Positions 17,247-41,800 of a stretch of 64,000 nt of DNA are shown piece by piece. Origin of the DNA: Macrostomum hystrix (Eukaryota > Animalia > Platyhelminthes); assembly GCA_950097015.1 (NCBI GenBank), contig CATNEN010000038.1, positions 28,644,001-28,708,000 of the forward strand, written 5' to 3'. A program made the translations under genes and the position numbers. Positions within the stretch are counted from its first letter, which is position 1. Each line of letters starts with the position of its first letter. The notes below the pieces were generated by a model that saw nothing but the letters and a program-made list of their open reading frames with translations, ran no database searches and had not been told where the DNA came from.

Positions 17247-20200
17247 ATGTCTGCTTCAGGCATGGCTTGCTCAGTAAACATTACTGTTAGCCGAGGACCA
17301 ATCAGGGTGGCCGTGATTGGCGCCGGTGTCTCTGGCTTGACAGCGGCTGCTCTGCTTCACCGGGCCGGCGTCCGGGTCACATTGTTCGAAGCCGGAGACA
17401 GGGTTGGCGGTCGGGTGCGCAGCGTTTGGCGCGGTGTGTTACAGATTGCGAAATGTTTTGTCACTCTATCCCCCACTATCTGTCTCTCTATTCCCCCACT
17501 ATCTGTCACTCTATACCCCCAGTTGTCTGTCACTCTATACCCCCAGTTTTCTGTCACTCTATACCCCCAGTTGTCTGTGACTATACCCCCAGTTGTCTGT
17601 CACTCTATCCCGCACTATCTGTCACTCTATACCCCCAGTTGTCTGTCACTCTATCCCCCACTGTTTGTCACTCTTTACCCCCAGTTGTCTGTCACTCTAT
17701 ACCCCCAGTTTTCTGTCACTCTATACCCCCAGTTGTCTGTCACTCTATTCCCCCACTATCTGTCACTCTATACCCCAGTTGTCTGTCACTCTATACCCCC
17801 AGTTGATGTCACTCTATACCCCCAGTTGTCTGTCACTCTATACCCCCAGTTGTCTGTCACTCTATACCCCCAGTTGTCTGTCACTCTATACCCCCAGTTG
17901 TCTGTCACTCAACCCCAGTTGTCTATCACTCTATGTCTCCGCACAGGCGCTACCCGCCTTGCCATGGGTCCTATGTGGCTTCACGGAGCTGGAGACAATC
18001 CGTTGCATGCCGCCCTGACGAATGTCCTCGGAGTGCAGTGGTTCTCCGAATCAACTTCGCTGGACACTCTCGAAGATGTCTTCGTCTGGTCGTCGGTTAC
18101 TGACGCAGCCGCTGATGCCGCCGTCACTGAGGCTGGTTCAACTGTTCCGCTCAGTTTGATGTCTCAGGCGGCTGCCGAGTTGAAATCCGCCCTGAGTTGT
18201 GCAGATTCGGATTCCGAATCCCGATTCGATTCCGAAATCAGCGTCGGTCAGTGGCTCGAGGAAAAGAAGGCGCTTTTCACAAATCGATCAGCTCCATTTG
18301 AAGCCGCACTTCGAGCTGTCTGCCGGCTCTACGCGAAAAGCGAAGGCGTCCACGGCCTCGATGGTCTGGGTCTGCTAGGCCAGTCTGCCTACGGTGATCA
18401 CACGCCTGGTGGCAACCTTTTCGCTGGCGGAGGCTTCGACCAGTTGACGCAGACTCTGGCCGACTATCTGCCTGGCGAGTGCCTCAAGTTGGGAAACAAG
18501 GTGCGAATTGGGGGGGGGGAAGACACAGCGGTCCAACGCGTTTGCCTCTCGCACCAAGGTCCCTTCTGAGCTCGATTCCGCGGCGAGGCCACATTCATTT
18601 GGGGCGCAGCCGCGGAGAGAAGGCTTGGCGGCTTGTCATTCAATTTACGCCCTTGAGGGCCAAACTCCAAGGCACAGTGAAAGTGTACACTGTCTGACAG
18701 TCACGGCAGAAATTTCAAATCTGCGTAAGCGTGTGCCTGCGTAAATTGGTTTTCAACTTCTATTTCAAACTAAGTAACTTTACAATTTCGCCCGCGGGCA
18801 GGGGGATGCTCGTTTGTACCCGATTAGTAACTCCAATTTGTTTCCTTGGCCTAAGATTCAAGCTCTTGACCTGCAATAAGAAGTTCTGAGCTCTCCCCAA
18901 ACCTATATTCTGAAATCCAGGTTAGCCAGGTTGCCATCTCAACGGACGGTTTAGCTTTGCTACTCGTCGGCTCCCAGTGGCAGCAGTTCGATCACGCTCT
19001 GATCACGGTGTCCCTAGGCGTGCTGCAGTCAGGCCAACTGCTTGAACCCAGCTTGGTTTCCTCCGAGCGTCGTCTGGCTATGGACCAGATGCGTCTGGGC
19101 CTTGTTGACAAACTATTTGTCCGCCTGGCCCAGTCAGCTCCGCTGCCAGCCGACTGCAATCACCTTTGGATTGCACGTCAGCACCTGTCCAACACCTGGT
19201 TGGACGGCCTGTTCTCACTGTCGGCTGTCAACAGACCAAAAGATATTATTATGTGTGAGGATATCACTAAAATTATTATTATTATTCATTGCCTACTTTT
19301 CGTTTTGACTTCAGATTTCTATTCAACCACTATTTTAGTTTGGATTGCTGGCGACTATGCCAGAGAAATGGAAGCCAAAACAGATGCCGTGCTCAGCCAC
19401 GATTTGACCGCCTTTCTGGAGCAAGTACTTCGCTCGCCGCTTCCAAAAATTATCGAAGTGATCAGGTATGAATTCGGGTGTGAGGTATATTTTCACTCGT
19501 TAAAGAACTAGATTTAGGAGTAAAATACTAGTATGATTTACATTTAGGGGACTATTGTATATTAGATTAGCAAACTGCCCCCATACAAAATAAAGGAATT
19601 TCTATCTTAATTAAATTTTAAAAAAATCGTCTACTTTAGTAAATTCGACTAGCAAATATGCATTCGGCGCAAAAGGCAAAGAATTTTCGGTAAATTTTGT
19701 TTGCAGAACAAATGTGATATTTTGACTTAGGTCTCTCTTTACGTTGAGATTCCTAAATGAGGTCGGGTGTCCTACTCTTTGTGAGAGATTCCCTTTTCGC
19801 AACTCGAAAATAACGAAGACAAGACGATTCAAATCCCAAGCTAAACAGCTGATATTTAAGTGTTAATCAGTAAATAAGAGAAAGCTATGATCACTGATCA
19901 ATTCCCCTGGCAGCGCTCTTTTCGTCCCCTGCCAGGTACTGTACTTAATTCAATCCAATTCACAATTCGCACTAACAATATCTCGATAACCGCAACACAA
20001 AACACGAACTCTACTCGATAATACGACACGATAAACAACACAAATAAATCCTAGACAAACAGATAGTCCCTATAACAAACAAGACAAATAACGCGAAACC
20101 TAACCAAAATCCCTAACATAAAACCGAGGCGACCAGCAAGCACTTCTGCACTATGGCACAACGATAGTTCTATCGTGCCACACCTAATGTCTGTTCGACG

Positions 20201-23200
20201 GCGTCCCACCGATGATTGTCGGCGATATGGAGAGTGCTTCCGTGCTTGCCAATCCCTATCTAACACTCCGTCAGCAGTTGGCCAGACGTACCGAGCTCAG
20301 CGCAAGCTACTTACTGACGTGGGGTTGAGTGTGGGGGTTTTCTTTGACTAACTAGTTGGACCGGTTTACCTGTCCCGGTATCTATTTACTAGGATGCGTA
20401 ACACGAATGAGAACAATATCAAGATCAAGAGCAAGAGCAAGGTCGAACGCGAGACCAGAATCACATGAGAACAATATTTCAGCGCAATAGTCAGTTTTAT
20501 AGTCAAGCGCCCGCCCCAGCCCTCATCAAAGCCTGGGTGCCGGCCGCGCCGCTTGTTCTTCTGCCAGGTCGACCCTGCCGGTTAACGAACCGGCTGCTGA
20601 TTGGCCCGGCTCGGGGTGTCGCACTTAAGTCGGTTCACTTCAATCGGCTAGCCGTCCTCCCATTGGTTGGGCCCACCAGACCAGGGCTAGTCTGATGCCT
20701 TGGCTGTAGAGCAGGGGTGACCGGCCGGTCGCGTGTTAGGCCTGGCTGGGGTGCGCATGTACAAACAACTAACCTATAAGATACATTAAAATAATTCATA
20801 ATATTGACGTGCGCGAATAAGTTACTACAAGTAGAAATATACGCATTATAAAAACATGCCGACACTACACTCCCCCCTCCTAAAAGAAGTGGAGTGCGAA
20901 CAAAACAGAAAATAAGGGACACAAGACTCGATACCTAAATAAAACTGGAAACCGAGATTTAAACAGAAAACGAAAATTTTCAACTCCTCTGGGGGACACC
21001 TCCTCCCCCCTCCTAAAAGAATAGGAGCTGGTTTAACGCGAAAAAGAAAATTTTACGCTATCTATAATCGTATTAAAGAAACAATACAGAAAGCAAAGGT
21101 TGTCCAAAGCACAATGTTTTGACTAACGCTTGTATTCCTTCGTCGCCGAAAAGGTACAATTTCAAAAAAATTTAGATTAATAATAACAGAACTAAAGCAT
21201 ATTAAGGTTTGCTTAAAGAATTCCATTAGATTTAAATTCAAAATACAAAATTCTGCAACTTGTCATCAAAATTTTACGATTAACTACAAAAGGAACAATA
21301 GAATGATCAGTTTAACAGCAAATTTAACAATTCGACTTCAAAATTCAACACTTGATTACAAAATTTCAATCAATATTCATGCTTTTTCAGCGCAAATTTT
21401 CTGACATTATAATTTAATTTGCAAGAAATATACTACTCTTAAAAGTATATCACACACTTTCGCAAGGAAAATCTGTACGATTCACGGACTCAACAATTTT
21501 CACAAATCCAATCTACTGGGCGGTCGGATACACGCTCTGTTTCTCAATCTCGGAGCCCAGCGCTCCTGAACTGGTAATTCCTCTCTTTGTCCTCGGGGCC
21601 GGCGTCCTCGGCCTTCTCGGTTCACTACGGCTGGCGGCACTGCGCCACCGCGCGCCGTTGGCACAACTAGCGTGGCTCGCGGAATCTCTGTCCGCACTGG
21701 AATTACTGGCACCCTTGGCACTGACGGCATTGCCTGCCTGTTCGGCACCGGTATCTGTGACGGTGCTTGCCGTGGCGCTACTTGGTGTGGTGGCCAATCG
21801 ATTTCAATATCCGGGTATTCTTCCTCCGGTTCCACCTCTGGCGCTCCGGCGCCGACTATCCCACGCCATGCGCATAATTTTTCTTCCGACAGATAACACG
21901 GTTTGACGCGATCTACACTGACTATTTCGTGGATCCGATCTGGCTGTTCAATGCCATGAACCTTGGGTCCGGGTTCGATTCTTAAACACTTGCCACTACC
22001 GGTGACCTCAAGTACGCGGTATGGTCCGACCCACTTCCGGTTCGTATTAAACTGTTTGTGGCCATTCGAAAGCCAAACTAAATCATTCGGTTTATAAAAA
22101 TTTTGAAATACTTTTGCGTCGTAGTTGGTTTTCATTCGAGTTATTGCTACTGATTGTCGTTGCCTAGCAACGCGAAAGGTCTCCATGCACTTCCGGTACA
22201 ATTCATGCACGTGCCGATCCGCAGTTTTTTGTTCTGGCGGAGGCAAACCGATTTCTGCGTCTACTGGCAGTCTCATCTTTCTGGCAAATAGCATTTCAAA
22301 TGGACTGAACTTGTTCGACTCGTTAATCGCACTGCGCTGTACCATCACGACGTGGGGCAAGACTTCATCCCACGCGAGGTCTAGTTCGTCACGCGCTAGC
22401 TTAATTCCATCCTTCACAACTCTGACCATTCGCTCACACTTCCCATTCGCTTGTGGGTGGTAACTAGTAGTGTGGCGCAAATCAATACGGAAATTCTCCG
22501 TTAAGCTCTTCACGATATCTGCGGTGAAAGAAGCTCCTCTATCAGAAATGAATGCTTCCGGTGCGCCATATCGGCAAATCCACTCCGTGTACAGAGTCCA
22601 TGCGGTGCTCTCTGCTGTACAATCGCGGAGGGCCTTCACCTCCATCCATCCGGTGAAATGATCGACCATCAGCAGCAGGTATTTATTCCCTCGCTGCGTT
22701 GTGTCAAAGGGTCCTGCGTAGTCTATGTGGACCTTCTCGCCCATGTAGCTACTAAGCTCGGGCTCCAATGGCGCTCTCAAATTCGGGCCGTATTTCTTTC
22801 TAGTCTGACATTCCGGACAAGTCTTAATATAGCGTTCTAAATTCGCAGAATAATTTGGCCACCAGAACCGTTGTCTAATCAGGTCTCTGGTCTTGGAGAT
22901 TCCTCCGTGGGCCATCTGATTATGATACCGCTCGAACAATTGCTTTTCGAGTTGCTCACTTTCTGGCAGCACGATCTGCTTAAATTCGCGGCCTTCATGA
23001 TCTCTATAACATCTGTAGATAATGTTCGAGTCTACAGTCAACTTGTCATAATCACTGTACAAGGACTTATAACTCCGATGCATTCCGATCCATTCGATCT
23101 TTGGCGGGCACTGCTCTCGCGCTAACAGGCGGGTTTTCAGTTTCAGCAACTCAGGCTGGCCGTCCTGAAGTTCGACCACACCTGCCGGAGAACTTATGTC

Positions 23201-26200
23201 TATGGCCCCGCAATCTATTCCGTCCGGTTTTCTAGCTGTATTGCACGTGGGGCACTCCTCGTGGTACTTTTTCGGGGGTCCGTCACGTGATGGTCGGCGG
23301 CTTAACGCATCTGCATTGCCATGACTCAGACCTTGGCGATATTCTATGGTAAAATCGTACTCTTCCATTCGGCTTATCACTTCGAACTGATCGAACTGTT
23401 CGAGGATCATGTTCCATCTTCCCAACATGCCCTTCGCACCGTGGCACTTCCTCAGCCACTGCAGTGCCGCGTGATCTGTTCTGATCTTAAAATGGCGACC
23501 AATCAGATACGGGCGATAGTGCTCAAGAAAATAAATTAGGGCGTACATCTCCTTCATCGTGGTGCAGTAATTCAACTGGTGCTGATTTAACGGGTGGGAC
23601 GCATAAGCGATCACCTTCTCTTCCCCGTCCTGCTCTTGCAACAAATTCCCTCCGATCGCGCTGTCGCTGGCGTCTACATCCAGGACAAAGGGTCCAGCTT
23701 CCTTATCGAATCTGGGATAGCTGAGGACAGGCGCGTGGGTCAATTTTTCTTTCAGCAGTTCGAAGGCTTTCTGGCACTCCTCATTCCAATGATATTTAAC
23801 ATCCTTTCGAGTCAGATTATTCAGCGGTTCGCTGATTCGGGCAAAGTCTTTAATAAATCGGCGATAGTAGCCTGCTAATCCTAGGAATCCTCTAAGCTCA
23901 GAGATGTTCTCTGGCCTAGGCCATCGTTGTACTTTCTCAATCTTGTCTTTACTGGTGTACACACCATGCTGACACACAGTATGACCGAGGAATTCAACCT
24001 CCTTCCGAAAGAGAAATGTCTTTTCGGGCTTAATTTTCATTCCTGCTTCCTCTAATCTGGCAAAAATAAGATCTAAATTTCTCAGCATCTCTTCGAAATT
24101 CTTGCCCGTGCAAATGACATCATCTAAATACAACAGGGCGAACTTGTAAGCGTAATCTCCTAAGATTCGCTGCATGATCCTTTGGAAACAGGCTGGACCG
24201 TTGGTTACTCCAAACGGCAGCACCTTCCACTGGAATAATCCATCGTGGGTTCGAAACGCCAATTTCTCTCTGTCACTCTCGCGCACTTTGACAGACCAGT
24301 AAGCTCCTACCATGTCCAGTGTGCTAAAGTACTGGTTGCCGGCGAGGGACTCTAATGATTCTTGAATTAATGGCAATGGGAAACTGTCCTTCTTAGTCTT
24401 GTTATTCAACTGTCTAAAATCACAGCAAAAGCGAAATTCACCGTTCTTCTTCCGAGCGAGGACTATAGGACAACTCCACTCGGACTCTGATGGTTCTACA
24501 AGATCGTGATCTAGTAATTGGCGGACATGTTCGCTGACAAACTCACGCTGCTCAGGGCTCTGCTTTCGCAGTGGAATTCGAACTGGAATCTCGTCGGTCG
24601 TCTCAATCTTAAATTCGCCGACGCGGGTCTTTCCAATGTCCCACTGATTCTGCGAAATCATACCTTGATACCGGTGTAGCAACTCAATTACTTTCAGTTG
24701 CTGATTTGCTGTCAGATCAGTCTCATCCAGTCTAAATTGATCCCTTATCTTAGTTGCTTCGCTCAGCGTGGGGATCCTCTTCTGATCTTGCCGCCGCTCG
24801 GCTGGCTCAGCTTTATCTACAAGAAAAATCTCTAACTCTTCGTTCGCTGGCTCATACTCAGCAATAACCTCATTCTCATGAATGGTCTTCTCATGCTCGG
24901 TTGGGTTCATGACCCTAACAAAGGTTTCGCCGAATTCATCTAGCGACGTTAGTCCCTTTGCAACTAGAATCGACTGATCCTCATCCTGACCGCTTTTCCT
25001 GGTAACAAAACCGTACTCAGCTGCATCAGGGGTCTCCCTACATTTGACTTTAATAAATTTCTCACTCAGTGCCGGAATCTTTGCCATGCTGGTTACTTGC
25101 AGTAGCACGCAACGTGCACTTTCATCTGCAGTGGTTAGTCTAATCCGAATGTTATTAAATTCTAGCGTCTTCTCAGCTATATCGAGCTTAATTCGGTGAC
25201 GGGTCAACAAATCGAGACCAATAATCGAAGTGGTTAGCAGGTCTTCTGCGACAAAGAACGGGTGGATCACCTCGCTCTGTCCGATTCTAACTCTTAAGGA
25301 CACCTGGCCCAACAGTCTGGTAGACTGGCTGTTGGCCGATTTCATGTTAATAGCGCACGGTTTTAATGCGGCTTTACAGGAGAAGAGCCGGTCAAATAGA
25401 CTCTTGTCAATCACGCAGTGCGACGCTCCCGTATCAATCAAAATTTCTTCACTAACGCCGTTCAACTGACTGTGCAGAAATAAACCTGAGTTTATGGCCT
25501 GATTGGAAATAATCGGTTGGACAAATCCGGCTACCTGCTTTTTTGCAAGCTTCTCTCCGGCTGCGGCTTCAACCTGCACGGAGTTTTCGAGCCTATTCAT
25601 TTCCTTTCTAAATTCTCTTATTTCTTTCTTCAGTTCCTCAACTTCCTTAGACTTCAGCCTCTCCTCTGGCTTCCTCACAGTCTGTTGCTGTGGAGCTCTA
25701 CTAGTTACAGGCTCTCGCTGCTTTGCAGCTGCTTTTGCAGTCTTCACAGGTGCTTTCATTTGCACTTCTTGGCGCAATTGCCGAATCTCTTCTCGCAGCT
25801 CTGACAGTTCATTTGCTGCCGCTGCATCTACGGACTTTCGCTGCTCAGTCTCACTGACTCTTAATTCAATGCCGTTTAATTTTCGGCGGTTGGCGTCAAA
25901 GGCCTGGCTCTGAGCTCTGCGCTCTGCCTTCTCTGTTTCGATTCCTGCGCAATCGGCGCAACTACAATAGGATTCTACTGACTCCGATATTGAATTAATA
26001 GACTGTTCGCTGTGTCCGCAGCATTCTACCTCTAAGGCGCGCTGCTTGTTACTATGAGTAGTATCACTAGCCCTAATAAAAGAAAAACTAGCTCGCTTCC
26101 TCAAATACAATAATAAATCGTAATTAGTTACTCCGCACGTGTCCCGCAAATGAAAGAAAATCTCCTTGCCTCTCCTATCTCTGAGGAATCCGTAGCCTCT

Positions 26201-29200
26201 GTTATAATTGTACCACACTAATCTTCCGAACTCTACGTTATTAAGCTTAATCTGCCGTGCGTCATTAATCACATCTCTCTGCTCAACCGGCCTTCGGTTA
26301 TTGCTGGGGGTAAATAAATTTAGTGGCGGGGAACGGTCAACCCCCCTCTGCTGCCGTTCCGCTTGCAGTTTAAAGGCTGTAGTCTCTGGGGACAGTCTCG
26401 CGCTACATGACCTGGTTGGTCGCAGATGTAACAGGTTCTGGGTCGTGCAGTAGGCGCATTCGCTCCCGCAGGATTGAAACGGTCATTGGCTGGTTGGCCT
26501 CGCCAACCTGACTGCCTTTCGACACCAGTCTGCTGTCTAGTGGGATTAAACTGCCTAGGTGGAAACATTCTGTTGTAACTGCTCATCTGCGGATTAAAAT
26601 ACGGTTGTGGCTGCGTCTGAGCCGGCGGTCTCATTGGCCGCTGAGTCTGCATCGATGCGAATTGCGGTCGCTGTTCCTGCCGGTAAAAGTACGGCGAACT
26701 CTCAGTGCGAAATTGCGGTGGTGGATAATAATTCGGTTCCTCTATCTGCTCAAACTGCGAGCTCTGCCTAGCGGCTTTGCCACGGAACTGTGCCTGCTTG
26801 ACGGGTTCAACCTGGGAAACCAAAGTCTCAGGCGGTTCCGCTTTTCTTCTACCCTTAGCCCCTTGGCTTGCCAGCTCATCGAGGATCTCCTCGTTCTTGG
26901 CTGCTGCGAGCAAATCCATGGCGGTATAAGCGTCGCCTCTGGACCGTCTGATAGAAATGACAGCCCGCCTAATTTTGTAATTCAAAATTCCGGCTTCAAA
27001 TCGCTCAGAAATTCTTTCTCTGGCCTGATTTTCAAGGCCTGCCTTCCGAACCAATTCAACCAGAGCGTCATAAAAGTGCTCAAGGCTCTCGCCTTCCTGT
27101 TGTTTCCGGTTCATCAACTGAATTTTTGCTTCTTCCTGCTGGGCAACTGGCCTGAATTTCTGCTGCAAACTCTCAACTAATCGTGGGTAAGCGAGGTTCG
27201 GGTCAAGGCCTAGATTAATATAAATCTTGTAAGCTTCTTCATCCAGCAAAGACAATAATTGGCAGGCTCTGGCATCAGCCTCAATGGCGTTACCTTGGCA
27301 ATAGTTAGTAAAAATCTTTAGAAAAACTTCAAAGTCTCCTCCGACAGCATAAGGCTTGGGTTTCGCTACTGAATTATTATTCCTATAAATAAGTCTAGGG
27401 GCAGCTCTCAAATTCTGGATCTGATTCTGCAGATCGGTAATTAAAGCTCTTAGTTGGTTATTGTCAGCTGCTAAGTTCTCTACTACTGCGGCTTGAGCAT
27501 TGACCTGTGGGTCGGCTAAGTTTTGACCTTGGTCTGGCCCGAGAGCAGGGCCTTCATTCTGTTCATTGGCTACGGCCGCAGGGTCTGGGCCAGCACCTCT
27601 AATTTCAACTCCTACACCCGCCATGTACAATTTTTATGAGTCACTGATAAGAAAGTCTGCGCGGGCGCTTATCTATAATAGAATCTAACTAACCGAGGCA
27701 ATAAAATTTCAATCGACCAATTGTACTAACACTGGCCTTTTAAGTTTGTAGCAAAAATAATAATAAGGTGGAATCTTTAATTAGATTGCAGAAGAACTAT
27801 ATCAATATAAGAACCGTGGAGGTATGTACTTCTCCAGGCTATCTCTATAGCAGAACTCTTAAACTTTCTTCTCAACAGGAATTCTCCTTTCTCTCAATAG
27901 AAATCAATCCTCCCTCAATAGAAATCTCTCCTCCCTAGAGGCTCCAAATGTGATATTTTGACTTAGGTCTCTCTTTACGTTGAGATTCCTAAATGAGGTC
28001 GGGTGTCCTACTCTTTGTGAGAGATTCCCTTTTCGCAACTCGAAAATAACGAAGACAAGACGATTCAAATCCCAAGCTAAACAGCTGATATTTAAGTGTT
28101 AATCAGTAAATAAGAGAAAGCTATGATCACTGATCAATTCCCCTGGCAGCGCTCTTTTCGTCCCCTGCCAGGTACTGTACTTAATTCAATCCAATTCACA
28201 ATTCGCACTAACAATATCTCGATAACCGCAACACAAAACACGAACTCTACTCGATAATACGACACGATAAACAACACAAATAAATCCTAGACAAACAGAT
28301 AGTCCCTATAACAAACAAGACAAATAACGCGAAACCTAACCAAAATCCCTAACATAAAACCGAGGCGACCAGCAAGCACTTCTGCACTATGGCACAACGA
28401 TAGTTCTATCGTGCCACACCTAATGTCTGTTCGACGGCGTCCCACCGATGATTGTCGGCGATATGGAGAGTGCTTCCGTGCTTGCCAATCCCTATCTAAC
28501 ACTCCGTCAGCAGTTGGCCAGACGTACCGAGCTCAGCGCAAGCTACTTACTGACGTGGGGTTGAGTGTGGGGGTTTTCTTTGACTAACTAGTTGGACCGG
28601 TTTACCTGTCCCGGTATCTATTTACTAGGATGCGTAACACGAATGAGAACAATATCAAGATCAAGAGCAAGAGCAAGGTCGAACGCGAGACCAGAATCAC
28701 ATGAGAACAATATTTCAGCGCAATAGTCAGTTTTATAGTCAAGCGCCCGCCCCAGCCCTCATCAAAGCCTGGGTGCCGGCCGCGCCGCTTGTTCTTCTGC
28801 CAGGTCGACCCTGCCGGTTAACGAACCGGCTGCTGATTGGCCCGGCTCGGGGTGTCGCACTTAAGTCGGTTCACTTCAATCGGCTAGCCGTCCTCCCATT
28901 GGTTGGGCCCACCAGACCAGGGCTAGTCTGATGCCTTGGCTGTAGAGCAGGGGTGACCGGCCGGTCGCGTGTTAGGCCTGGCTGGGGTGCGCATGTACAA
29001 ACAACTAACCTATAAGATACATTAAAATAATTCATAATATTGACGTGCGCGAATAAGTTACTACAAGTAGAAATATACGCATTATAAAAACATGCCGACA
29101 CTACACAAAAAATTATTCTAGTATAATTTTCTTTGCGGCTATAATGTTTTTAGTACACTTGTATATTAGACTAGCAATTTCTGCCAACCTTTAGAAAAAA

Positions 29201-29727: not shown

Positions 29728-30299
29728 AGCTTAGGTGACAATCAGATACAAGATTTCCGAGCTGTCTGTCTGCCTGTCGTCTTCATTTTAAAGTCTTCCA
29801 CTTGCGTAAATGTGCTCGTCAGAAATTAACATTAAGTACATGAGTTTATTTGATTTAAATTAAATAAGTTTAGAAGCGAAATCGAGATTTTTGTTAACGA
29901 TATCATACGGCTCGTAAAACAGACAGATGAGAAGCGACTAAAAAACCTTAAATTTGATTTTTCTCATTGAGTTCGTTTAGGCAGAAATCTTTTTTATGCC
30001 AACAAAACAGGTTTGCTATGATTTACACTTTATTTGAACCGTCCAATCGTTCTTAACAAATTTTTTTTTGTATTCTGTGTTAGCATCTTCATTTTACAAT
30101 TTCTAATAAAAGTTCAAAGTTTTAAAGAAGAATTTACATTCGACGTAATTATATTCACGTTTTTGTGACTTCAAATTTGATGATTTCTTTTAAGCTATCA
30201 AAAACGACTTTAACCTAACTCTAATTAATGTTAAAAACTTACTAGCCAGCAGAATCTGTTACACAGAAATCTTAGCAAGAATTAGCAAGAACCACAGGA

Positions 30300-31055
30300 G
30301 AAACGTAGCTATAGAATCGCAGCAGAATATGTAGCTATGGAATCGCAGCAGAATTTGTAGCTATGGAATCGCAGCAGAATATGTAGATATGGAATCGCAG
30401 CAGAATATTTAGCTATGGAATCGCAGCAGAATATGTAGCTATGGAATCGCAGCAGAATATGTAGCTATGGAATCGCAGCAGAATATGTAGCTATGGAATC
30501 GCAGCAGAAACCGTAGAACCCGTAGAACTGTAATCGCAGCAGAATATGTAGCTATGGAATCGCAGCAGAATATGTAGCTATGGAATCGCAGCAGAATATG
30601 TAGCTATGGAATCGCATCAGAAACCGTAGTAATGGAATCACAGCAGAACCCGAAGATTTGGAATCGCAGCAGAATGTGTAGCTATGGAATCGCAGCAGAA
30701 TATGTAGCTATGGAATCGCAGCAGAAAAAGTAGCTATATAATCGCAGCAGAAAAAGTAGCTATATAATCGCAGCAGAAAAAGTAGCTATATAATCGCAGC
30801 AGAAAAAGTAGCTATGGAATCGCAGCAGAAAAAGTAGCTTTGGAATCGCAGCAGAACCCGAAGCTATGGAATCGCAGCAGAAAAAGTAGCTATGGAATCG
30901 CAGCAGAACCCGAAGCTATGGAATCGCAGCAGAATATGTAGCTCGTAGCTATGGAATCGCAGCAGAACCCGAAGCTATGGAATCGCAGCAGAATATGTAG
31001 CTCGTAGCTATGGAATCGCAGCAGAACCCGAAGCTATGGAATCGTAGCAGAATCC
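30300..31055. repeat. 26-bp minisatellite (GCAGAATATGTAGCTATGGAATCGCA)
   Basis: Direct copies, intergenic. Confidence 0.92.
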
Positions 31056-31689
31056 ATAGAAATGAAATCACAGTTTAGAAGGTAAATGTTCATTCGTTTC
31101 ACAGGAATTTTAATTAGATCGACACAGCATTTTCGGTTGTATTGTCGAGTAAATAAAAGTGCACAGTTGTTGTACAGTTGTTTTAGTGCTTTCGCATATT
31201 TTGCTCGGCCAATAGCCAATGTCATTTATCAATGACGCTTTTAGACCAACTTTCTGGCGAAGAAATTGTCTTACAATGCGTTCCACTTAGCGAGCGGACA
31301 ATGCAACAGGATAGTGATGACTATATGGCTACTAAATTGCACTTGGGAACAATTTAGGACAAAAAACATACTTAGGAAGAACTTTTTCAGATCTTTACAT
31401 AGGTGGAGTCAGGGATGAAGAGTCATAGGTTTCTCTTTTATGCAAGTTCTGTTCGTCAATTAGCGAGAGTGCTTCGGTGGCAAACATACTCGAGCGTTGA
31501 AGACTTTTCGTCTATAGCTATGTAGATATAGCTAGCAATTCTTGGTTGTCTATAGGCTTCAAATTGAGCTGAGACAAGACATGCCTACTTCTCCTCCTAC
31601 ATCTCTACATGTCCTCTCTCCTCCCTCTCCCCTTAAGCAAACTGCTTTCTTGTAGCTACTGCCCAGAATATCTACTAACCCTGTCTGCT

Positions 31690-32807: not shown

Positions 32808-35800
32808 ATGTAAGTAAGTTGCATTTCTATCTAGCCGTTGGTTCTAAGTCTCTGCTTGATTATTTGTGCAAGCAGACCAAAGCATGTATATAGATTTAAT
32901 TAATTCTCTTCTAGTCCAACAAACTCTTGGCTCTAGAAAAATCTCTAGAGCTTTTGGTTGCTTTTGCGGAATACATATGGTTAACATTATTTAGAGAATT
33001 ACTAATAGATTGGCTACACAATATATATCGATATTTTAGGACAGTCAAACCGATAGGCAACACAATTAACGCTGGATAAAAGCACAGTTAGTACGAAATC
33101 TACTCGTACTTCTTTAAAGCTGAGCATATTGGTATGGAAAATAAGTGTTTGAATGAATTATCATACAATCTAATCACATGAATCAAGTGTAAACTTAAAT
33201 CCACCAAAATCCCATCCAGCTCACCAGAGTCTACCGAAATCCCATCCAGTTCACCAGAGTCTACCGAAATCCCATCCAGTTCACCAGAGTCTACCGAAAT
33301 CCCATCCAGTTCACCAGAGTCTACCGAAATCCCATCCAGTTCACCAGAGTCTACCGAAATCCCATCCAGTACACAAGAGTCTACCGAAATCCCATCCAGT
33401 TCACCAGAGTCTACTGAAATCCCATCCAGTTCACCAGAGTCTACCGAAATCCCATCCAGTTCACCAGAGTCTCCGAAATCCCATCCAGTTCACCAGAATC
33501 CAACGAAATCCCATCCAGTACACCAGAATCCAACGAAATCCCATCCAGTTCACCAGAGTCTACCGAAATCCCATCCAGTTCACCAGAGTCTCCGAAATCC
33601 CATCCAGTTCACCAGAGTCTACCGAAATCCCATCCAGTTCACCAGAGTCTACCGAAATCCCATCCAGTTCACCAGAATCCAACGAAATCCCATCGAGTAC
33701 ACCAGAATCCAGTAAAATCCCATCCAGTACACCAGAGTCTACCGAAATCCCATCCAGTTCACCAGAGTATACCGAAATCCCATCCAGTACACCAGAATCC
33801 AACGAAATCCCATCCAGTTCGCCAGAATCCAACGAAATCCCATCGAGTACACCAGAGTCTACCGAAATCCCATCCAGTACACCAGAGTCTACCGAAATCC
33901 CATCCAGTACACCAGAGTCTCCGAAATCCCATCCAGTTCACCAGAGTCTACCGAAATCCCATCGAGTACACCAGAATCCAGTAAAATCCCATCCAGTTCA
34001 CCAGAGTCTACCGAAATCCCATCCAGTTCACAAGAATCCAACGAAATCCAATCCAGTACACCAGAATCCAACGAAATCCCATCCAGTACACTAGAGTCTA
34101 CCAAAATCCCATCCAGTTCACTAGAGTCTACCGAAATCCCATCCAGTTCACCAGAATCCACCGAAATCCCATCCAGTTCACCAGAGTCTACCGAAATCCC
34201 ATCCAGTTCGCCAGAGTCTACCGAAATCCCATCCAGTACACCAGAATCCAACGAAATCCCATCGAGTACACCAGAATCCAGTAAAATCCCATCCAGTTCA
34301 CCAGAGTCTACCGAAATCCCATCCAGTTCACAAGAATCCAACGAAATCCAATCCAGTACACCAGAATCCAACGAAATCCCATCCAGTACACTAGAGTCTA
34401 CCGAAATCCCATCCAGTTCACTAGAGTCTACCGAAATCCCATCCAGTTCACCAGAATCCAACGAAATCCCATCCAGTACACCAGAATCCAACGAAATCCC
34501 ATCCAGTTCGCCAGAGTCTACCGAAATCCCATCCAGTACACCAGAATCCAACGAAATCCCATCCAGTACACCAGAGTCTACCGAAATCCCATCCAGTACA
34601 CCAGAATCCAACGAAATCCCATCTACTACACCAGAATCCAGTAAAATCCCATCTACTACACCAGAGTCTACCGAAATCCCATCCAGTTCGCCAGAGTCTA
34701 CCGAAATCCCATCCAGTACACCAGAATCCAACGAAATCCCATCCAGTACACCAGAGTCTACCGAAATCCCATCCAGTACACCAGAATCCAACGAAATCCC
34801 ATCGAGTACACCAGAATCCAGTAAAATCCCATCTACTACACCAGAGTCTACCGAAATCCCATCCAGTCACCAGAGTCCACCGAAATCCCATCCAGTACAC
34901 CAGAATCCAGTAAAATCCCATCCAGTACACCAGAATCCAGTAAAATCCCATCCAGTCACCAGAATCCACCGAAATCCCATCCAGTTCACCAGAGTCTACC
35001 GAAATCCCATCCAGTTCACAAGAATCCAACGAAATCCAATCCAGTACACCAGAATCCAGTAAAATCCCATCCACTACACCAGAGTCTACCGAAATCCCAT
35101 CCAGTCACCAGAGTCCACCGAAATCCCATCCAGTTCACCAGAGTCTACCGAAATCCCATCCAGTTCGCCAGAGTCTACCGAAATCCCATCCAGTACACCA
35201 GAATCCAACGAAATCCCATCCAGTTCACCAGAGTCTACCGAAATCCCATCCAGTTCGCCAGAGTCTACCGAAATCCCATCCAGTACACCAGAATCCAACG
35301 AAATCCCATCCAGTTCGCCAGAGTCTACCGAAATCCCATCCAGTTCGCCAGAGTCTACCGAAATCCCATCCAGTTCGCCAGAGTCTACCGAAATCCCATC
35401 CAGTTCACCAGAATCCAACGAAATCCCATCCAGTACACCAGAATCCAACGAAATCCCATCCAGTTCGCCAGAGTCTACCGAAATCCCATCCAGTACACCA
35501 GAATCCAACGAAATCCCATCCAGTACACCAGAGTCTACCGAAATCCCATCCAGTACACCAGAATCCAACGAAATCCCATCGAGTACACCAGAATCCAGTA
35601 AAATCCCATCTACTACACCAGAGTCTACCGAAATCCCATCCAGTTCGCCAGAGTCTACCGAAATCCCATCCAGTACACCAGAATCCAACGAAATCCCATC
35701 CAGTACACCAGAGTCTACCGAAATCCCATCCAGTACACCAGAATCCAACGAAATCCCATCGAGTACACCAGAATCCAGTAAAATCCCATCTACTACACCA

Positions 35801-38800
35801 GAGTCTACCGAAATCCCATCCAGTCACCAGAGTCCACCGAAATCCCATCCAGTACACCAGAATCCAACGAAATCCCATCCAGTTCACCAGAGTCTACCGA
35901 AATCCCATCCAGTTCGCCAGAGTCTACCGAAATCCCATCCAGTACACCAGAATCCAACGAAATCCCATCGAGTACACCAGAATCCAGTAAAATCCCATCC
36001 AGTTCACCAGAGTCTACCGAAATCCCATCCAGTTCACAAGAATCCAACGAAATCCAATCCAGTACACCAGAATCCAACGAAATCCCATCCAGTACACTAG
36101 AGTCTACCGAAATCCCATCCAGTTCACTAGAGTCTACCGAAATCCCATCCAGTTCACCAGAATCCACCGAAATCCCATCCAGTTCACCAGAATCCAGTAA
36201 AATCCCATCCACTACACCAGAGTCTACCGAAATCCCATCCAGTCACCAGAGTCCACCGAAATCCCATCCAGTTCACTAGAGTCGACCGAAATCCCATCCA
36301 GTTCACCAGAGTCTACCGAAATCCAATCCAGTACACCAGAATCCAGCGAAATCCCATCGAGTACACCAGAATCCAGTAAAATCTCATCCAGTCACCAGAG
36401 TCTACCGAAATCCCATCCAGTTCACAAGAATCCAACGAAATCCAATCCAGTACACCAGAATCCAACGAAATCCCATCCAGTACACTAGAGTCTACCGAAA
36501 TCCCATCCAGTTCACTAGAGTCTACCGAAATCCCATCCAGTTCACTAGAGTCTACCGAAATCCCATCCAGTACACCAGAATCCAGCGAAACCCCTTCCTG
36601 TAAATCTAATTCTACTGAAATCCCCATTCACTTAAATCCCCATGTACACCAGAGCGCTAGAGGAATAGAGCGGCACGGAATGCACAATCAGTGTAGAGAG
36701 AACAAAGAGCCAACCAATCAGCGCACGAGTTGGGGGTTAGATAGTCAACCAAGGGGTAGAAAAAGTGAGCTAACCAATCAGCGCACGAGTTGGTGTTAGA
36801 TTGGTAACCAAGGGGTAGAAAAAGTGAGCTAACCAATCAGCGCACGAGTTGGTGTTAGATAGTCAACCAAGGGGTAGAAAAAGAGAGCTAAACCAATCAG
36901 CGCCGAGTTGGGGTTGAGATTAAACCAGGGGTGGTAAAAATATTGTTAAGATTGAACAGAGTATCCGAAAGCATGTAAGCAGGGAAATAGATAATCCAGC
37001 CTTTTCTGTCAATCAATTTACGCCACAGGAGTCACTGCTGCGAAGGTCTGGCACGGATCTGCCGCTCCTACTGCCGTCACCTCCTGTCCGCAACAGCTGG
37101 CAGATTTTGGCACATTGTCGCCGTTGATGACACAGACGCTGGCAATGCAAGCATTAGCAGCAGCAGCAGCAGCTGTATAAAAATTTGCCGAGGGCGCCAA
37201 ATTGCATGCAGTTGCGTTTGCCATCGCAGAAAAGTACAATCGCGAGTAGGAGACGAACAAGAAAATGATGAAAGTGACAATGAAGAGTGTCGAATGCTGC
37301 CTCAGTCCTGCCAAAGCGAATGTCGCAATTCACACCTGCTGGCATCGGACAGCGCCATAGAGATGACTTCATTGTGCTGCTACGGTCGGATGATGCACTC
37401 TAGTTCCAGACTGAGCGAGGATGGACCAGTGTACAGGTGAGTTTTTACCTAAACCCTTTGACTAGGTTTTCGAGAAAATTATTCTCAAATTAAAAATATA
37501 TAATACAAAAATAGTCCATCAGAAACGAGTCGTTTGTTTCATAGAATCGACATAAATTTCGATTCATAACTTTGAAATCAGAAAATATTTCCTAGAAAGG
37601 CCAGGTTTTTTAGAATTTACATACGTTTCCTAGAAAATTTTCTTTTCCTAAACTGGCCATATATTTTGTTGGCACGCTACGTAAGGTTTGCTAAAATTAA
37701 CATAAGTTTCTTAGAATCGTTATAGGGTTTTTTAGAATCAGCGTGGGTTTCTTTGAATAATAAAATGGGTTTCCTAGAATCCACATTTGTTTCTAGGAAT
37801 CGGTATTTTTTCTTGAAGTACTAGAAGCAACAGTATGAATCAACAGTATGAAGCAGCATAGGTTTCTAAGAATCAGCACGGGTTTGTTCTTTAGAATCGG
37901 AAAGGGTTTCGTAATATCAGAATAGATTTCTTAGAATAAACATTTGTTTCCTAGAAGCCGCATTGGTTTCTTAGAATTGGAATGGGTTTTTCGTAGAATC
38001 AGAATGTCTAGGTTTCTTTGAACCAGAATAGGTTTCTTAGAACCAGGATAGATTTCTTAGAACCAGAATGGGTTTCTTAGAACCAGAATAGGTTTCTTAG
38101 AACCAGAATAGGTTTCTTAGAACCAGAATGGGTTTCTTAGAACTAGTATGGGTTTCTTAGAACTAGAATAGGTTTCTTAGAACTAGAATAGGTTTCTTAG
38201 AACCAGAATAGGTTTCTTAGATCCAGAATAGGTTTCTTAGAACCAGAATAGGTTTCTTAGAACCAGAATAGGTTTCTTAGAACCAGAATAGGTTTCTTAG
38301 AACCAGAATAGGTTTCTTAGAACCAGAATAGGTTTCTTAGAACCAGAATAGATTTCTTAGAACTAGAATATGTTTCTTAGAACTAGAATATGTTTCTTAG
38401 AACCAGAATAGGTTTCTTAGAACCAGAATATGTTTCTTAGAACTAGAATATGTTTCTTAGAACTAGAATAGGTTTCTTAGAACCAGAATAGGTTTCTTAG
38501 AACCAGAATAGGTTTCTTAGAACTAGAATAGGTTTCTTAGAACCAGAAAAGTTCTCTAAAACTAGCTGACAGGAGTTATATGTCAAGAGCTTGTCAACAA
38601 AGTGATATTCGAAATAGGAAAACTAATTTATGACCGAGTTTAGACTTAACGACTGCGGATGAAGGACAATATAGGATCCCAGTGCTTCTGAATGCTGTCC
38701 CTTAGGAATATTTTTCTCTGACCTAATTCGTTGGGAAAAACTAGAAACACAGACTCAATCAAGTAATTTAATCAACTTTTATCGACTTTTAATTAAAAGT

Positions 38801-41800
38801 AGTAGCTCGCCGTTTCATAGGGAAATAGGACTGGCAAGAAAACAGAAGTGATATGAAGAGCATGGAGTGACTTGCAGAGAATATATTTACAATGATAAAA
38901 TACTTTGAAGGCGAGAATGGAATGACAAGAAGAGAATGGAGTGACAGGATGAGAATGGAGGGACAAGGGAAGAATGGAGTGATAAGTAGAGATAAGAGTG
39001 ACAAGGAGAGAATGAAGTGACAGGATGAGAATGGAGTGACAAGGAGAGAATGGAGTGACAGGATCAGAATTGAGTGACAAGATGAAAAGGGAGTGATAAG
39101 GAAGAGAATGGAGTGACAAGATGAAAAGTGAGTGACAAGGAGAGAATGGAGTGACAAGATAAGAATGGAGTGACAAGATGAAAAGGGAGCGACAAGGAAG
39201 AGAATGGAGTGACAAGATGAAAAGGGAGTGACAAGGAGAGAATGGAATGACAAAGAGAGAATTGGGTGACAATAAAAGAATGGAGTGAAAAGATGGGAAT
39301 GGAGTGAAAAGAATAGAATGGGGTGACAACGAGAGAACGTAGTGGCAAGGTCTAGCATAGTAGAAGTATCTATTAAGAATAACAAAAAAGAATAAATCAA
39401 AGGAAGAGAAGGTGAAGTGGGATTAAGCTCGTACATAACAAACTTGACTGCACAAGATAGATAATGGTGAAAGTGGTTAATTAATTTTCCTGCTAAAGCC
39501 ACAGACACACAGTTAGCAGAAGAGAAAAATTAATCGCAGCCTTTTGCAATGCCAAATTGATGTACGACTGCCTTCTTGGCTGAGTTTGCCAAGCCACTTT
39601 GAGCTGTCAGTTTTAAACTGGTTCCCATACTCCTTACTGACTCTAAATTGTGTTTGAGTATAGAAAAAGTCTACGTGAATAACTGGCCATAAAGAATTGA
39701 ATAAAATAGTTGCTAAGGGCCAGTTTTTTTATCCATTGTTGAAGCCAGACAGATAAACTAAGAGTCTACGATAAGAAAGCAAATGTCAGCAGAAAATGTA
39801 TGATCTATTAAATAATATGACAGTGCTATTCTGGGTCGGTTTGTACTTTATTGACACTGAATGCTACCATGCACGATGCTTGCTACTGATTTGTTTCGAT
39901 AAGTAGTATATATACGAGTTATTATATATTATATCCTATCAGTTGAGAAAAAATCTAACTGTTTTTAATTGATTAGTAATTTCGATGATTCCTGTGGTGT
40001 GATTCTACGATCTTCTGTCTAACAGGTTCGATGATCTGTCTAACAGGTTCGATGATCTTCTGTCTAACAGGTTCGATGATCTTCTGTCTAACAGGTTCGA
40101 TGATCTGTCTAACAGGTTCGATGATCTTCTGTCTAACAGGTTCGATGATCTTCTGTCTAACAGGTTCGATGATCATCTGTCTAACAGGTTCGATGATCTT
40201 CTGTCTAACAGGTTCGATGATCTTCTGTCTAACAGGTTCGATGATCTTCTGTCTAACAGGTTCGATGATCTTCTGTCTAACAGGTTCGATGATCTTCTGT
40301 CTAACAGGTTTGACGATCTTCTGTCTAACAGGTTCTATGATCTTCTGTCTAACAGGTTCGATGATCTTCTGTCTAACAGATTGGATGATCTTCTGTCTAA
40401 CAGGTTTGACGATCTTCTGTCTAACAGGTTCGATGATCTTCTGTCTAACAGGTTCGACGATCTTCTGTCTAACAGGTTCGATGATCTTCTGTCTAACAGG
40501 TTTCATAATCTTCTGTCTAACAGGTTTCATAATCTTCTGTCTAACAGGTTCGATGATCTTCTGTCTAACAGGTTCGATGATCTTCTGTCTAACAGGTTCG
40601 ATGATCTTCTGTCTAACAGGTTCGATGATCTTCTGTCTAACAGGTTCGATGATCTTCTGTCTAACAGGTTCGACGATCTTCTGTCTAACAGGTTCGATGA
40701 TCTTCTGTCTAACAGGTTTCATAATCTTCTGTCTAACAGGTTTCATAATCTTCTGTCTAACAGGTTCGATGATCTTCTGTCTAACAGGTTCGATGATCTT
40801 CTGTCTAACAGGTTCGATGATCTTCTGTCTAACAGGTTTGACGATCTTCTGTCTAACAGGTTCTATGATCTTCTGTCTAACAGGTTCGATGATCATCTGT
40901 CTAACAGGTTTGATGATCTTCTGTCTAACATGTTCAATGATCTTCTGTCTAACAGGTTCGATGATCTTCTGTCTAACAGGTTCGATGTTCTTCTGTCTAA
41001 CAGGTTCGACGATCTTCTGTCTAACAGGTTCGATGATCATCTGTCTAACAGGTTTCATAATCTTCTGTCTAACAGGTTTCATAATCTTCTGTCTAACAGG
41101 TTCGATGATCTTCTGTCTAACAGGTTCGATGATCTTCTGTCTAACAGGTTCGATGATCTTCTGTCTAACAGGTTCGATGATCTTCTGTCTAACAGGTTCG
41201 ATGATCTTCTGTCTAACAGGTTCGATGATCTTCTGTCTAACAGGTTTCATAATCTTCTGTCTAACAGGTTTCATAATCTTCTGTCTAACAGGTTCGATGA
41301 TCTTCTGTCTAACAGGTTCGATGATCTTCTGTCTAACAGGTTGGATGATCTTCTGTCTAACAGGTTGGATGATCTTCTGTCTAACAGGTTGGATGATCTT
41401 CTGTCTAACAGGTTCGATGATCTTCTGTCTAACAGGTTCGATGATCTTCTGTCTAACAGGTTGGATGATCTGTCTAACAGGTTGGATGATCTGTCTAACA
41501 GTTTCGATGATCTTCTCTCTAACAGGTTGGATGATCTGTCTAACAGGTTGGATGATCTGTCTAACAGGTTGGATGATCTTCTGTCTAACAGGTTCGATGA
41601 TCTTCTGTCTAACAGGTTCGATGATCTTCTGTCTAGCAGGTTCGATGATCTTCTGTCTAACAGGTTCGATGATCTTCTGTCTAACATGTTCAATGATCTT
41701 CTGTCTAACAGGTTCGATGATCTTCTGTCTAACAGGTTCGATGATCATCTGTCTAACAGGTTCGATGATTATCTGTCAAACAGGTTGGATTATGTTTCCC

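Follow-up and report, generated by a model that had tools for sequence, protein, structure and literature searches.

A diverged cold-shock domain next to the nucleocapsid zinc knuckle in Gag-Pol of flatworm Ty3/gypsy retrotransposons

The window (the whole stretch of Macrostomum hystrix DNA analysed here, 64,000 nucleotides) harbours a Ty3/gypsy retrotransposon encoding a genuine but diverged cold-shock domain (CSD), with a likeness to known CSDs that goes beyond chance. The domain follows the CCHC zinc knuckle in Gag-Pol and probably serves as a single-stranded-nucleic-acid-binding or chaperone module that aids reverse transcription.

Structure of the element

The element is intact and very young, as the first-pass annotation had stated, with identical 1157-bp LTRs and a TTTG duplication at its flanks (Table 1). 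Characters of Ty3/gypsy elements (Metaviridae) present in it include the TG...CA LTRs, the short duplication and the polypurine tract, as well as the Gag CCHC knuckle and the order protease (PR), reverse transcriptase (RT), RNase H and integrase in pol, as identified with Pfam. The listed pol ORF comprises 1590 aa (21500-26272, reverse strand), with the CSD at its start, upstream of the protease. The first-pass annotation had placed the domain before the protease, and the peptide quoted there corresponds to residues 14-83 of this frame. It was located at 26024-26233, an interval that gives the peptide on the reverse strand, whereas the forward strand translates to nonsense with stops. The linker between CSD and protease may form a coiled coil, judging from its sequence.

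Table 1. Features of the Ty3/gypsy element in the window
Feature	Position	Strand	Evidence or remark
Complete Ty3/gypsy LTR retrotransposon (TG...CA)	19713..29105	(-)	Direct repeats 100% identical, both flanks TTTG
Target-site duplication TTTG, 4 bp	19709-19712 and 29106-29109		Flanks the window element
5' LTR, 1157 bp	27949..29105	(-)	Zero mismatches to the 3' LTR
3' LTR, 1157 bp	19713..20869	(-)	Identical to the 5' LTR
Candidate primer-binding site, 17-mer starting TGG	27930..27946	(-)	2 nt past the 5' LTR; sequence reading only
Polypurine tract AGGAGGGGGGAG, adjoining the 3' LTR	20870..20881	(-)	Sequence reading
gag, first ATG 27624, stop 26320-26322	26320..27624	(-)	Weak capsid-type matches Retrotrans_gag, DUF1759, PNMA; zf-CCHC match
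Nucleocapsid CCHC zinc knuckle, Gag aa 398-415	26386..26439	(-)	PF00098, 32 bits, E 1.1e-7
-1 frameshift slippery heptamer T_TTA_AAC (putative)	26368..26374	(-)	X_XXY_YYZ in gag frame, codons P-L-N
Predicted frameshift-stimulating hairpin	26330..26360	(-)	Begins 7 nt past the heptamer; folding energy, covariation with L016
pol frame, -1 relative to gag, stop 21500-21502	21500..26374	(-)	Open from ~26482; open frame 1660 aa
Cold-shock domain, ORF aa 13-84, ~72 residues	26021..26236	(-)	Pfam, profile searches, AlphaFold2/Foldseek
CSD-protease linker, ~170 aa, charged, heptad-like	25508..26020	(-)	Weak matches to coiled-coil-type families
Aspartic protease, aa 269-358	25199..25468	(-)	PF13975 + PF13650
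Reverse transcriptase	23975..24454	(-)	PF00078, 119 bits
RNase H	23393..23788	(-)	PF17919 + PF17917
Integrase, H2C2 zinc-binding domain and catalytic core	22400..22957	(-)	PF17921 + PF00665

Identity and predicted fold of the cold-shock domain

A Pfam search had been suggested as a check of the domain, and its outcome differs between families. The window copy matches Pfam CSD (PF00313) with 21.1-21.8 bits (E 2.8e-4 for the 100 aa taken alone), below the curated gathering cutoff of 27 bits, and the alignment covers just positions 3-31 of the 66 in the profile. However, the CSDs of five sister families clear the cutoff over positions 2-65 (L016 28.8, L063 34.4, L064 32.9, L069 30.3 and L072 29.9 bits). 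The window copy is the most diverged member of the element CSDs, having diverged in its second half.

The reciprocal search of 1.84 billion proteins with a profile of the window domain and its paralogue returned 144 matches, 140 of which carry Pfam CSD (97%), in agreement with the CSD/OB-fold pattern initially read from the peptide. ESM-Atlas neighbours of the window domain are CSD clusters (0.90-0.91). PDB sequence matches to the profile of the window's subclade are all cold-shock proteins, with bacterial CspB as the best one. With a profile of six element families, the top seven PDB matches are all CSDs of Unr/CSDE1 (1wfq, 7zhh, 2yty, 4qqb, 2ytx, 6y6e and 1x65), led by human UNR 1wfq with an E-value of 2e-7. 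The word-indexed protein search with pol residues 1-260 and the CSD region of L063, a weak test given its length window and word index, detected no match.

The window CSD possesses the RNP1-like motif R-G-Y-G-F-L and the RNP2-like motif I-F-F-H, aligned with KGYGFI and VFVH of Bc-Csp, and keeps the strand 1 Trp, the Y-G-F of RNP1 and the F-x-H of RNP2. The motifs [YF]GF and F-x-H were found in six out of six element families. In CspB and YB-1, the aromatic and His positions of RNP1 and RNP2 contact nucleic acid. The RNP2 position that is aromatic in CspB, which we take to be Phe30, corresponds to Leu in the window CSD.

The domain is predicted to adopt a five-stranded antiparallel beta-barrel (OB fold), the fold that the first-pass annotation had proposed to look for. 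Two AlphaFold2 models, with pLDDT of 88.4 and 88.6, the second built from four element-derived sequences only, gave a barrel of five strands, with a single helix between the third and the fourth. The best 50 Foldseek matches were all CSDs. Fold matches include CspA (1mjc, target-normalised TM-score 0.80-0.81, E 7e-5 to 2e-4), YB-1, Unr, Lin28A (9w4r_B) and AtGRP2 (8tg0). Among the viral structures of BFVD, the best matches were cold-shock proteins of phages and giant viruses.

Putative -1 frameshift

In the pol frame, no ATG occurs until aa ~175 of the listed ORF, hence none is present upstream of the CSD. In the window's family, the CSD is putatively reached by -1 frameshifting at T_TTA_AAC, assisted by the hairpin. 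The heptamer is read CCT-TTA-AAC in gag, lies inside the gag/pol overlap where the -1 pol frame is open across it, and is conserved in the paralogous family L016 at identical codons of gag. The hairpin, with a folding energy of -16.8 kcal/mol, shares ten pairs with L016, three of them preserved by compensatory double changes, and its stability is not exceptional compared with shuffled sequence (z -1.1). A pseudoknot between a G-run in the loop and a downstream C-run, possible according to MFE folding, was set aside, as the C-run is not conserved in L016.

Only in the window's subclade does the frameshift site fall between the CCHC knuckle and the CSD, therefore the CSD looks like the start of Pol. 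If reached by the frameshift only, the CSD would be carried by Gag-Pol alone and not by bulk Gag in the window's family, and with only this minority of molecules carrying it, a bulk RNA-coating role would be unlikely. Among RNA runs, just one contains any part of the stretch, namely a sediment metatranscriptome in which two contigs of 151 nt cover gag and the 5' UTR; coverage of the CSD was nil in this run, which is neutral on CSD expression.

Distribution, origin and selection

The window family comprises five near-identical full-length or near-full-length copies on three contigs, and L016, 53% identical, also bears the CSD. Four further families encode gag, zf-CCHC, CSD, PR and RT in one frame, with the CSD 25-40 aa past the knuckle and a linker of ~25 aa, compared with the long, charged, heptad-like linker of the window's subclade. 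Six or more families in this genome and an element from a marine metagenome have the order knuckle-CSD-protease in common, and the CSD belongs to the nucleocapsid end of Gag-Pol. The earlier description of the domain as the start of Pol is thus correct as a frame position, but does not extend to the four single-frame families. The metagenome protein P0003 has the order CSD-linker-PR, and the same 6.5-kb contig encodes an RT 76% identical to that of the window. One eukaryotic retroelement of this type carries the name of a bacterial MAG in its deposited record.

In the PR-RT tree, all CSD-bearing rows fall in one clade with support of 100/98. The CSD is thus an old, clade-wide acquisition, ancestral to at least six families and the metagenome element. 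The first-pass annotation had suggested capture by this element; the domain is indeed present, but the capture was not made by this copy. Loss or degeneration in sister copies had been raised as a possible objection, and the CSD is neither absent nor degenerate in L016, the four further families and the metagenome element. Searched with the HMM of the element CSDs, 120 public RT relatives gave no CSD; apart from P0148 and P0149, their identity does not exceed 51%, and N-terminal truncation may affect many of the models. Apart from one decayed, exon-like match, the scan of metagenome contigs with the CSD alignment yielded only CSD genes that are cellular or bacterial, and it did not recover the P0003 contig.

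Host CSD genes found in this genome reach just 11-24 bits against the element profile, including 12.8 bits for an Unr-like exon. In the donor comparison, Unr/CSDE1 is best with the six-family profile and bacterial CspB with the window subclade, the domain being too short and diverged for a reliable tree. We consider it a tentative possibility that the clade added an animal Unr-type CSD to its nucleocapsid, and that the frameshift of one subclade made the CSD a polymerase-tethered component rather than a coat component. If true, this would be the first OB-fold/CSD chaperone module in any LTR retroelement or retrovirus. Literature searches found no publication on a CSD in Ty3/gypsy elements, in line with the earlier impression that such a lineage is undescribed.

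The first-pass annotation had derived selection on the domain from the intact and young state of the element. This state is uninformative on selection: among the five copies, differences amount to just 10-15 nt in 3.8 kb (~0.3%), too few to be of use. Nonetheless, comparisons between families show that the CSD is under purifying selection, with pN/pS of 0.33 between the window and L016 (Fisher p 1e-11) and of 0.23-0.64 in four other family pairs, values that are rough, with synonymous sites saturated between families. Constraint on the CSD is similar to that on the protease and tighter than that on the linker or the N-terminal part of Gag. The linker is the least conserved part, with 39% identity to the paralogue.

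Possible function of the domain

The CSD would most likely act together with the nucleocapsid, as a nucleic-acid chaperone or a packaging module. The domain, which may bind nucleic acid, would act beside the knuckle as a second single-stranded-nucleic-acid-binding or chaperone module, help Gag-Pol to bind the genomic RNA of the element, and support primer annealing and strand transfer in reverse transcription. In the window's family, only Gag-Pol molecules would bring the CSD, via the -1 frameshift.

A less probable explanation is that the CSD is real and selected but regulatory, binding the mRNA of the element or host RNAs instead of acting as a reverse-transcription chaperone. It would then affect translation, frameshift efficiency, RNA stability or localisation, or shield RNA from small-RNA silencing, as Unr/CSDE1 and Y-box proteins do in mRNPs. 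Unr/CSDE1 proteins, which provide the seven best solved-structure matches of the six-family profile, regulate translation and mRNA stability, and production of the CSD only with Gag-Pol in the window's family suits a low-dose, cis-acting role. However, its fixed place by the knuckle, in a particle-forming polyprotein and in every family, fits a role within the particle better. Regulatory and chaperone roles are not exclusive, and the present data do not distinguish them.

We regard as doubtful that the barrel is only a structural spacer, or serves to regulate protease activation or the assembly of Gag-Pol, with nucleic-acid binding lost or irrelevant, for example with CSD and heptad-rich linker together delaying protease dimerisation. 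The position directly upstream of the protease, the long linker added in the window's subclade and the diverged second half of the window CSD agree with such a role. Nevertheless, the RNP1/RNP2 aromatic and His positions are kept across families despite saturated synonymous change, and the short linker of the four single-frame families argues against a conserved unit of linker and CSD. We reject as highly improbable that the similarity arose by chance, that the element is an assembly chimera, or that a functionless host exon was captured recently in a single event, readings which the score of the window copy below the Pfam cutoff might suggest. Against them stand the near-identical copies on three contigs, the CSD in the paralogue, four more families and the metagenome element, the reciprocal profile search, the confident fold prediction, the purifying selection and the low scores of host CSD genes.

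Comparison with known systems

The CSD occupies the same place as retroviral and Ty3 nucleocapsids, the C-terminal end of Gag, and as a nucleic-acid chaperone would share their presumed job, namely to bind genomic RNA, anneal the primer and assist strand transfer. To our knowledge, known nucleocapsids depend on zinc knuckles and basic tails. Neither literature searches nor viral structure matches revealed a nucleocapsid with an OB fold or CSD.

Accessory domains define retroelement lineages and reveal the steps that limit replication. Chromoviruses are Ty3/gypsy elements with an integrase chromodomain, and ORF1p of LINE-1 is an RRM-containing chaperone. Both are precedents for a lineage-defining domain acquired from the cell, binding nucleic acid or chromatin and under selection, but the element described here has another domain at another location, and the step of the life cycle presumed for it is also different.

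The nearest public relative is the Macrostomum lignano Ty3/Mdg4 protein BOX15_Mlig028235g4, 91% identical over RT-RNase H, which groups inside the window's subclade in the PR-RT tree. Its public gene model begins at an internal Met, downstream of the expected CSD site. Macrostomum lignano Ty3/Mdg4 elements were described by Ustyantsev et al. 2025 (PMC12801592), whose text contains no 'cold shock', 'cold-shock' or 'CSD'. Two lessons for annotation are that the CSD is missed by gene models placed to start at pol's first Met, and that a eukaryotic element of this type is filed under a bacterial MAG name. Functional tests could draw on several diverged families, on one family that is very young and intact, and on the flatworm relative Macrostomum lignano, which can be made transgenic (PMC5730564).

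The CSDs of Unr/CSDE1 have YGFIQ and LFFH-type motifs in common with the element CSD; however, the element possesses one CSD and not five to nine, and is a retrotransposon. Lin28 and plant CSD proteins (AtGRP2/AtCSP), like the element, combine a CSD and retroviral-type CCHC knuckle(s) in one polypeptide. Both bind single-stranded RNA, and the plant ones are RNA chaperones. In contrast to them, the order in the element is reversed (knuckle, then CSD), with a single knuckle, within Gag-Pol, and in the window's family the pair is split by the frameshift site; identity is ~15-20%. The likeness is therefore best read as a resemblance in possible mode of action, not as family membership. With a CSD joined to their nucleocapsid, these elements would have solved the RNA-chaperone problem of reverse transcription in a new way, and would have re-created the Lin28-type combination of CSD and zinc knuckle independently.

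Identity of the cold-shock domain

The first-pass annotation placed a cold-shock domain (CSD) at 26024-26233 of the window. This position was correct, although the domain is encoded on the minus strand; the plus-strand translation is nonsense interrupted by stops. The peptide quoted in that annotation belongs to an open frame of 1590 aa (21500-26272, minus strand), where it occupies residues 14-83, and the domain precedes the Pfam protease of pol, as had been described.

Several partly independent lines of evidence agree that the domain is a CSD. A reciprocal search, with a profile built solely from the window domain and a paralogue 53% identical to it, returned 144 matches at E <= 1e-3 among 1.84 billion proteins, 140 of which carry Pfam CSD. 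When compared by language-model features, the domain was closest to CSD clusters of the ESM Atlas (0.90-0.91). The solved structures matched by sequence with the window-subclade alignment were cold-shock proteins, with CspB first (E 2e-4); the other matches of this query were weak and only to retroviral-type proteases, because the alignment includes the protease part of the metagenome protein P0003. AlphaFold2 gave a pLDDT of 88.4 with an 18-row alignment including cellular CSDs, and of 88.6 with a 4-row alignment restricted to sequences from the elements, used as control against leakage from cellular CSDs. Both models possess five strands, the third and fourth being separated by a helix, and matched CspA (1mjc) at a target-normalised TM-score of 0.80-0.81. 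The best 50 Foldseek matches in the PDB were all CSDs, including CspA, Bc-Csp, CRHSP-24, YB-1, Unr, Lin28, and AtGRP2. The earlier assignment to the CSD/OB fold is in agreement with the reciprocal search, the predicted models, and the Foldseek matches.

The Pfam CSD match of the window copy (aa 16-43) is sub-threshold, since it reaches 18-21 bits where the cutoff is 27, and covers only profile positions 3-31 of 66, whereas its relatives score 28.8-34.4 bits across the full profile. The window CSD is the most diverged member. Alignment to Bc-Csp showed that the positions contacting nucleic acid are retained, namely Trp in strand 1, Y-G-F in RNP1, and F-x-H in RNP2; at one of the aromatic RNP2 positions the window copy has Leu instead.

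Structure and copies of the window element

The element that carries the domain is a Ty3/gypsy LTR retrotransposon (19713-29105, minus strand). Its direct repeats are 100% identical across 1162 nt, and it is bounded by a TTTG target-site duplication. A polypurine tract adjoins the 3' LTR, and a candidate primer-binding site starting with TGG lies 2 nt past the 5' LTR.

The search of the whole genome (220 Mb, 42 contigs) revealed five near-identical copies of the window family, in addition to fragments. Four out of the five encode the full 1660-aa frame, and one is shortened (759-aa frame). The window copy differs from the three copies alignable end to end by 10-15 nt per 3.8 kb; therefore, the window family is very young. 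The public protein nearest to the window pol is a Macrostomum lignano gene model, with 91% identity in RT-RNase H, which makes a Macrostomum-like flatworm the probable host.

The retrotransposon lies among more than 30 distinct minisatellite arrays, which crowd the window (1-64000); their periods are 10-62 nt, and they reach up to 3.4 kb in length. Two of the arrays coincide with strong blocks of GC skew, at 32-36 kb and 42-46 kb. A tandem array of about 28-34 units of 26 nt starts approximately 1.1 kb outside the 5' LTR. Two 151-nt contigs from a sediment metatranscriptome (run X1) are at least 99% identical to the gag and 5' UTR of the element, a hint that this sediment is inhabited by the host or by a close relative of it.

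Coordinates of features in the window and at locus L016; aa positions refer to the 1590-aa frame, except for gag
Feature	Position	Strand	Details
5' LTR	27949-29105	-	1157 bp, TG...CA ends
3' LTR	19713-20869	-	1157 bp, TG...CA ends
gag	26320-27624	-	single CCHC knuckle near its end, aa 398-415
CSD	26021-26236	-	aa 13-84
Protease	aa 269-358	-	Pfam
RT	aa 607-766	-	Pfam
RNase H	aa 829-960	-	Pfam
Integrase	aa 1106-1291	-	Pfam
Slippery heptamer	26368-26374		T_TTA_AAC
Example minisatellite arrays	10211-11823, 33203-36598, 40009-41790, 42540-43952, 47590-49632
Tandem array	30201-31096		26-nt unit
Metatranscriptome matches	27105-27254 and 27651-27801		gag and 5' UTR
L016	G000:C39:4871000-4880999; CSD 9082-9318	-	pol split into 1031-aa and 528-aa frames

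Proposed expression of the domain by frameshifting

With respect to gag, pol lies in the -1 frame; it is open from about 26482 and overlaps the end of gag. Within this overlap we found the heptamer T_TTA_AAC, read as CCT-TTA-AAC in the gag frame, which fits the canonical slippery arrangement X_XXY_YYZ. A hairpin of -16.8 kcal/mol begins 7 nt after the heptamer, with a stability that taken alone is no better than that of shuffled sequence (z -1.1). In L016, a related family in the same genome, the heptamer is kept at the same gag codons, despite saturated synonymous sites relative to the window. L016 also keeps the hairpin stem, in which double changes (A-U to G-C) preserve three out of ten pairs. 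These signals suggest -1 frameshifting at the heptamer. Upstream of about aa 175, pol lacks an in-frame ATG, and together with the shift signals in the overlap this indicates that the CSD can be made only as part of a Gag-Pol fusion, about 45 residues past the shift site and about 75 past the knuckle.

Distribution and phylogeny

L016 has the same layout as the window family, with a CSD 53% and an RT 90% identical to those of the window. It is apparently single copy in the genome, and of the CSD-bearing families it is the closest to the M. lignano protein. The L016 copy is dead: its CSD frame contains stops, the reading frame changes between shift site and CSD, and pol is broken.

The whole-genome Pfam CSD scan detected a full-length CSD within open frames at at least 21 places, which correspond to four further families. 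These frames range from about 360 aa in broken copies to 2066 aa, the majority being 1900-2066 aa long. Each of the four families encodes in one frame a capsid-like Gag, zf-CCHC, CSD, protease, and RT, with the CSD 25-40 aa past the knuckle and about 25 aa ahead of the protease. The same scan recovered host genes as well, five of them Y-box-like (about 93 bits) and others with split exons. The five Y-box-like paralogues (L054-L058, on C39, C3, C10, and C30) have near-identical CSDs at about 90-93 bits, and in several host CSD genes an intron splits the domain at profile position 30.

Beyond this genome, the 234-aa protein P0003 has the order CSD-linker-protease and shares a 6,521-bp metagenome contig with P0149, which comprises RT, RNase H, and integrase and has 76% identity to the window protein. 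The contig of P0003/P0145 and P0149 (NCBI MEE4247032.1) was deposited as part of a 'Kangiellaceae bacterium' MAG; most likely it is eukaryotic (flatworm-like) and was placed in a bacterial genome during binning. A search of 120 public RT relatives with an HMM of the element CSDs gave no match. Another gypsy family of the same genome (L037-L053) is without CSD, and its pol frame starts just 50-75 aa before the protease. This family is abundant and very young, with 17 loci on C1, C2, C3, C5, C38, and C39; identity among sixteen out of the seventeen copies is 97-100%, and L040 shares 87-94% identity with the others.

A maximum-likelihood tree was computed for the protease-to-RT region (35 rows, 470 columns); the seven rows with a CSD all belong to one clade with support 100/98, divided into two deep subclades. 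The M. lignano model (P0148, BOX15_Mlig028235g4) falls inside this clade. Its annotated N-terminus begins past the CSD position, at an internal Met in the linker, so a CSD further upstream, if made through frameshifting, would be absent from the annotation. The proposal that the window element itself captured the domain is not sustained, since the CSD is a trait of a lineage comprising at least six families and the metagenome element. The simplest reading is a single old acquisition, after which, in the window subclade, a frameshift site would have come to lie between knuckle and CSD and a charged linker would have expanded.

Origin and selection

With the profile of all six families, the best seven solved structures were all Unr/CSDE1, human UNR (1wfq) being first (E 2e-7), followed by Y-box proteins and then bacterial Csps; the window subclade alone had CspB as best match. 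The host CSD exons that were readable scored 11-24 bits against the element profile, and recent capture from a present-day host gene appears unlikely. The best viral predicted-structure matches were phage and giant-virus cold-shock proteins, and no retro-transcribing virus was among the matches listed.

Between families pS is 0.75-0.97, that is, saturated, and CSD replacement sites change far less. Because of this saturation the pN/pS ratios are rough upper bounds; for the window against L016 they are 0.33 in the CSD (Fisher p 1e-11), 0.22 in the protease, 0.09 in RT, and 0.56 in the linker. Pairs of the four single-frame families gave 0.23-0.64 in the CSD, 0.34-0.46 in the protease, and 0.44-0.59 in the N-terminal part of Gag. 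Constraint on the CSD is thus about equal to that on the protease, which upholds the earlier suggestion that the domain is under selection.

Proposed function

Full-text literature searches on CSDs in LTR retrotransposons, Gag, or nucleocapsid, and on LTR retrotransposons of Macrostomum, found no description of a CSD in an LTR retroelement, and the terms 'cold shock', 'cold-shock', and 'CSD' are absent from the text of a 2025 survey of M. lignano LTR retrotransposons. The novelty presumed for a CSD-bearing gypsy lineage is consistent with these searches.

Because the knuckle-CSD-protease neighbourhood is constant and the RNP surface is retained, we prefer the reading that the CSD would extend the nucleic-acid-binding and chaperone function of the nucleocapsid, covering recognition of genomic RNA, primer annealing, and strand transfer. 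A less probable explanation is that the CSD acts as a regulator in mRNPs, affecting translation, frameshifting, RNA protection or silencing evasion, and a structural or protease-timing role is more doubtful still. In the window family, where only Gag-Pol would carry the CSD, a role tied to the precursor of the polymerase would be favoured over a bulk coating of RNA. Lin28 and plant CSD proteins possess the same pair of domains, knuckle and CSD, as the element.
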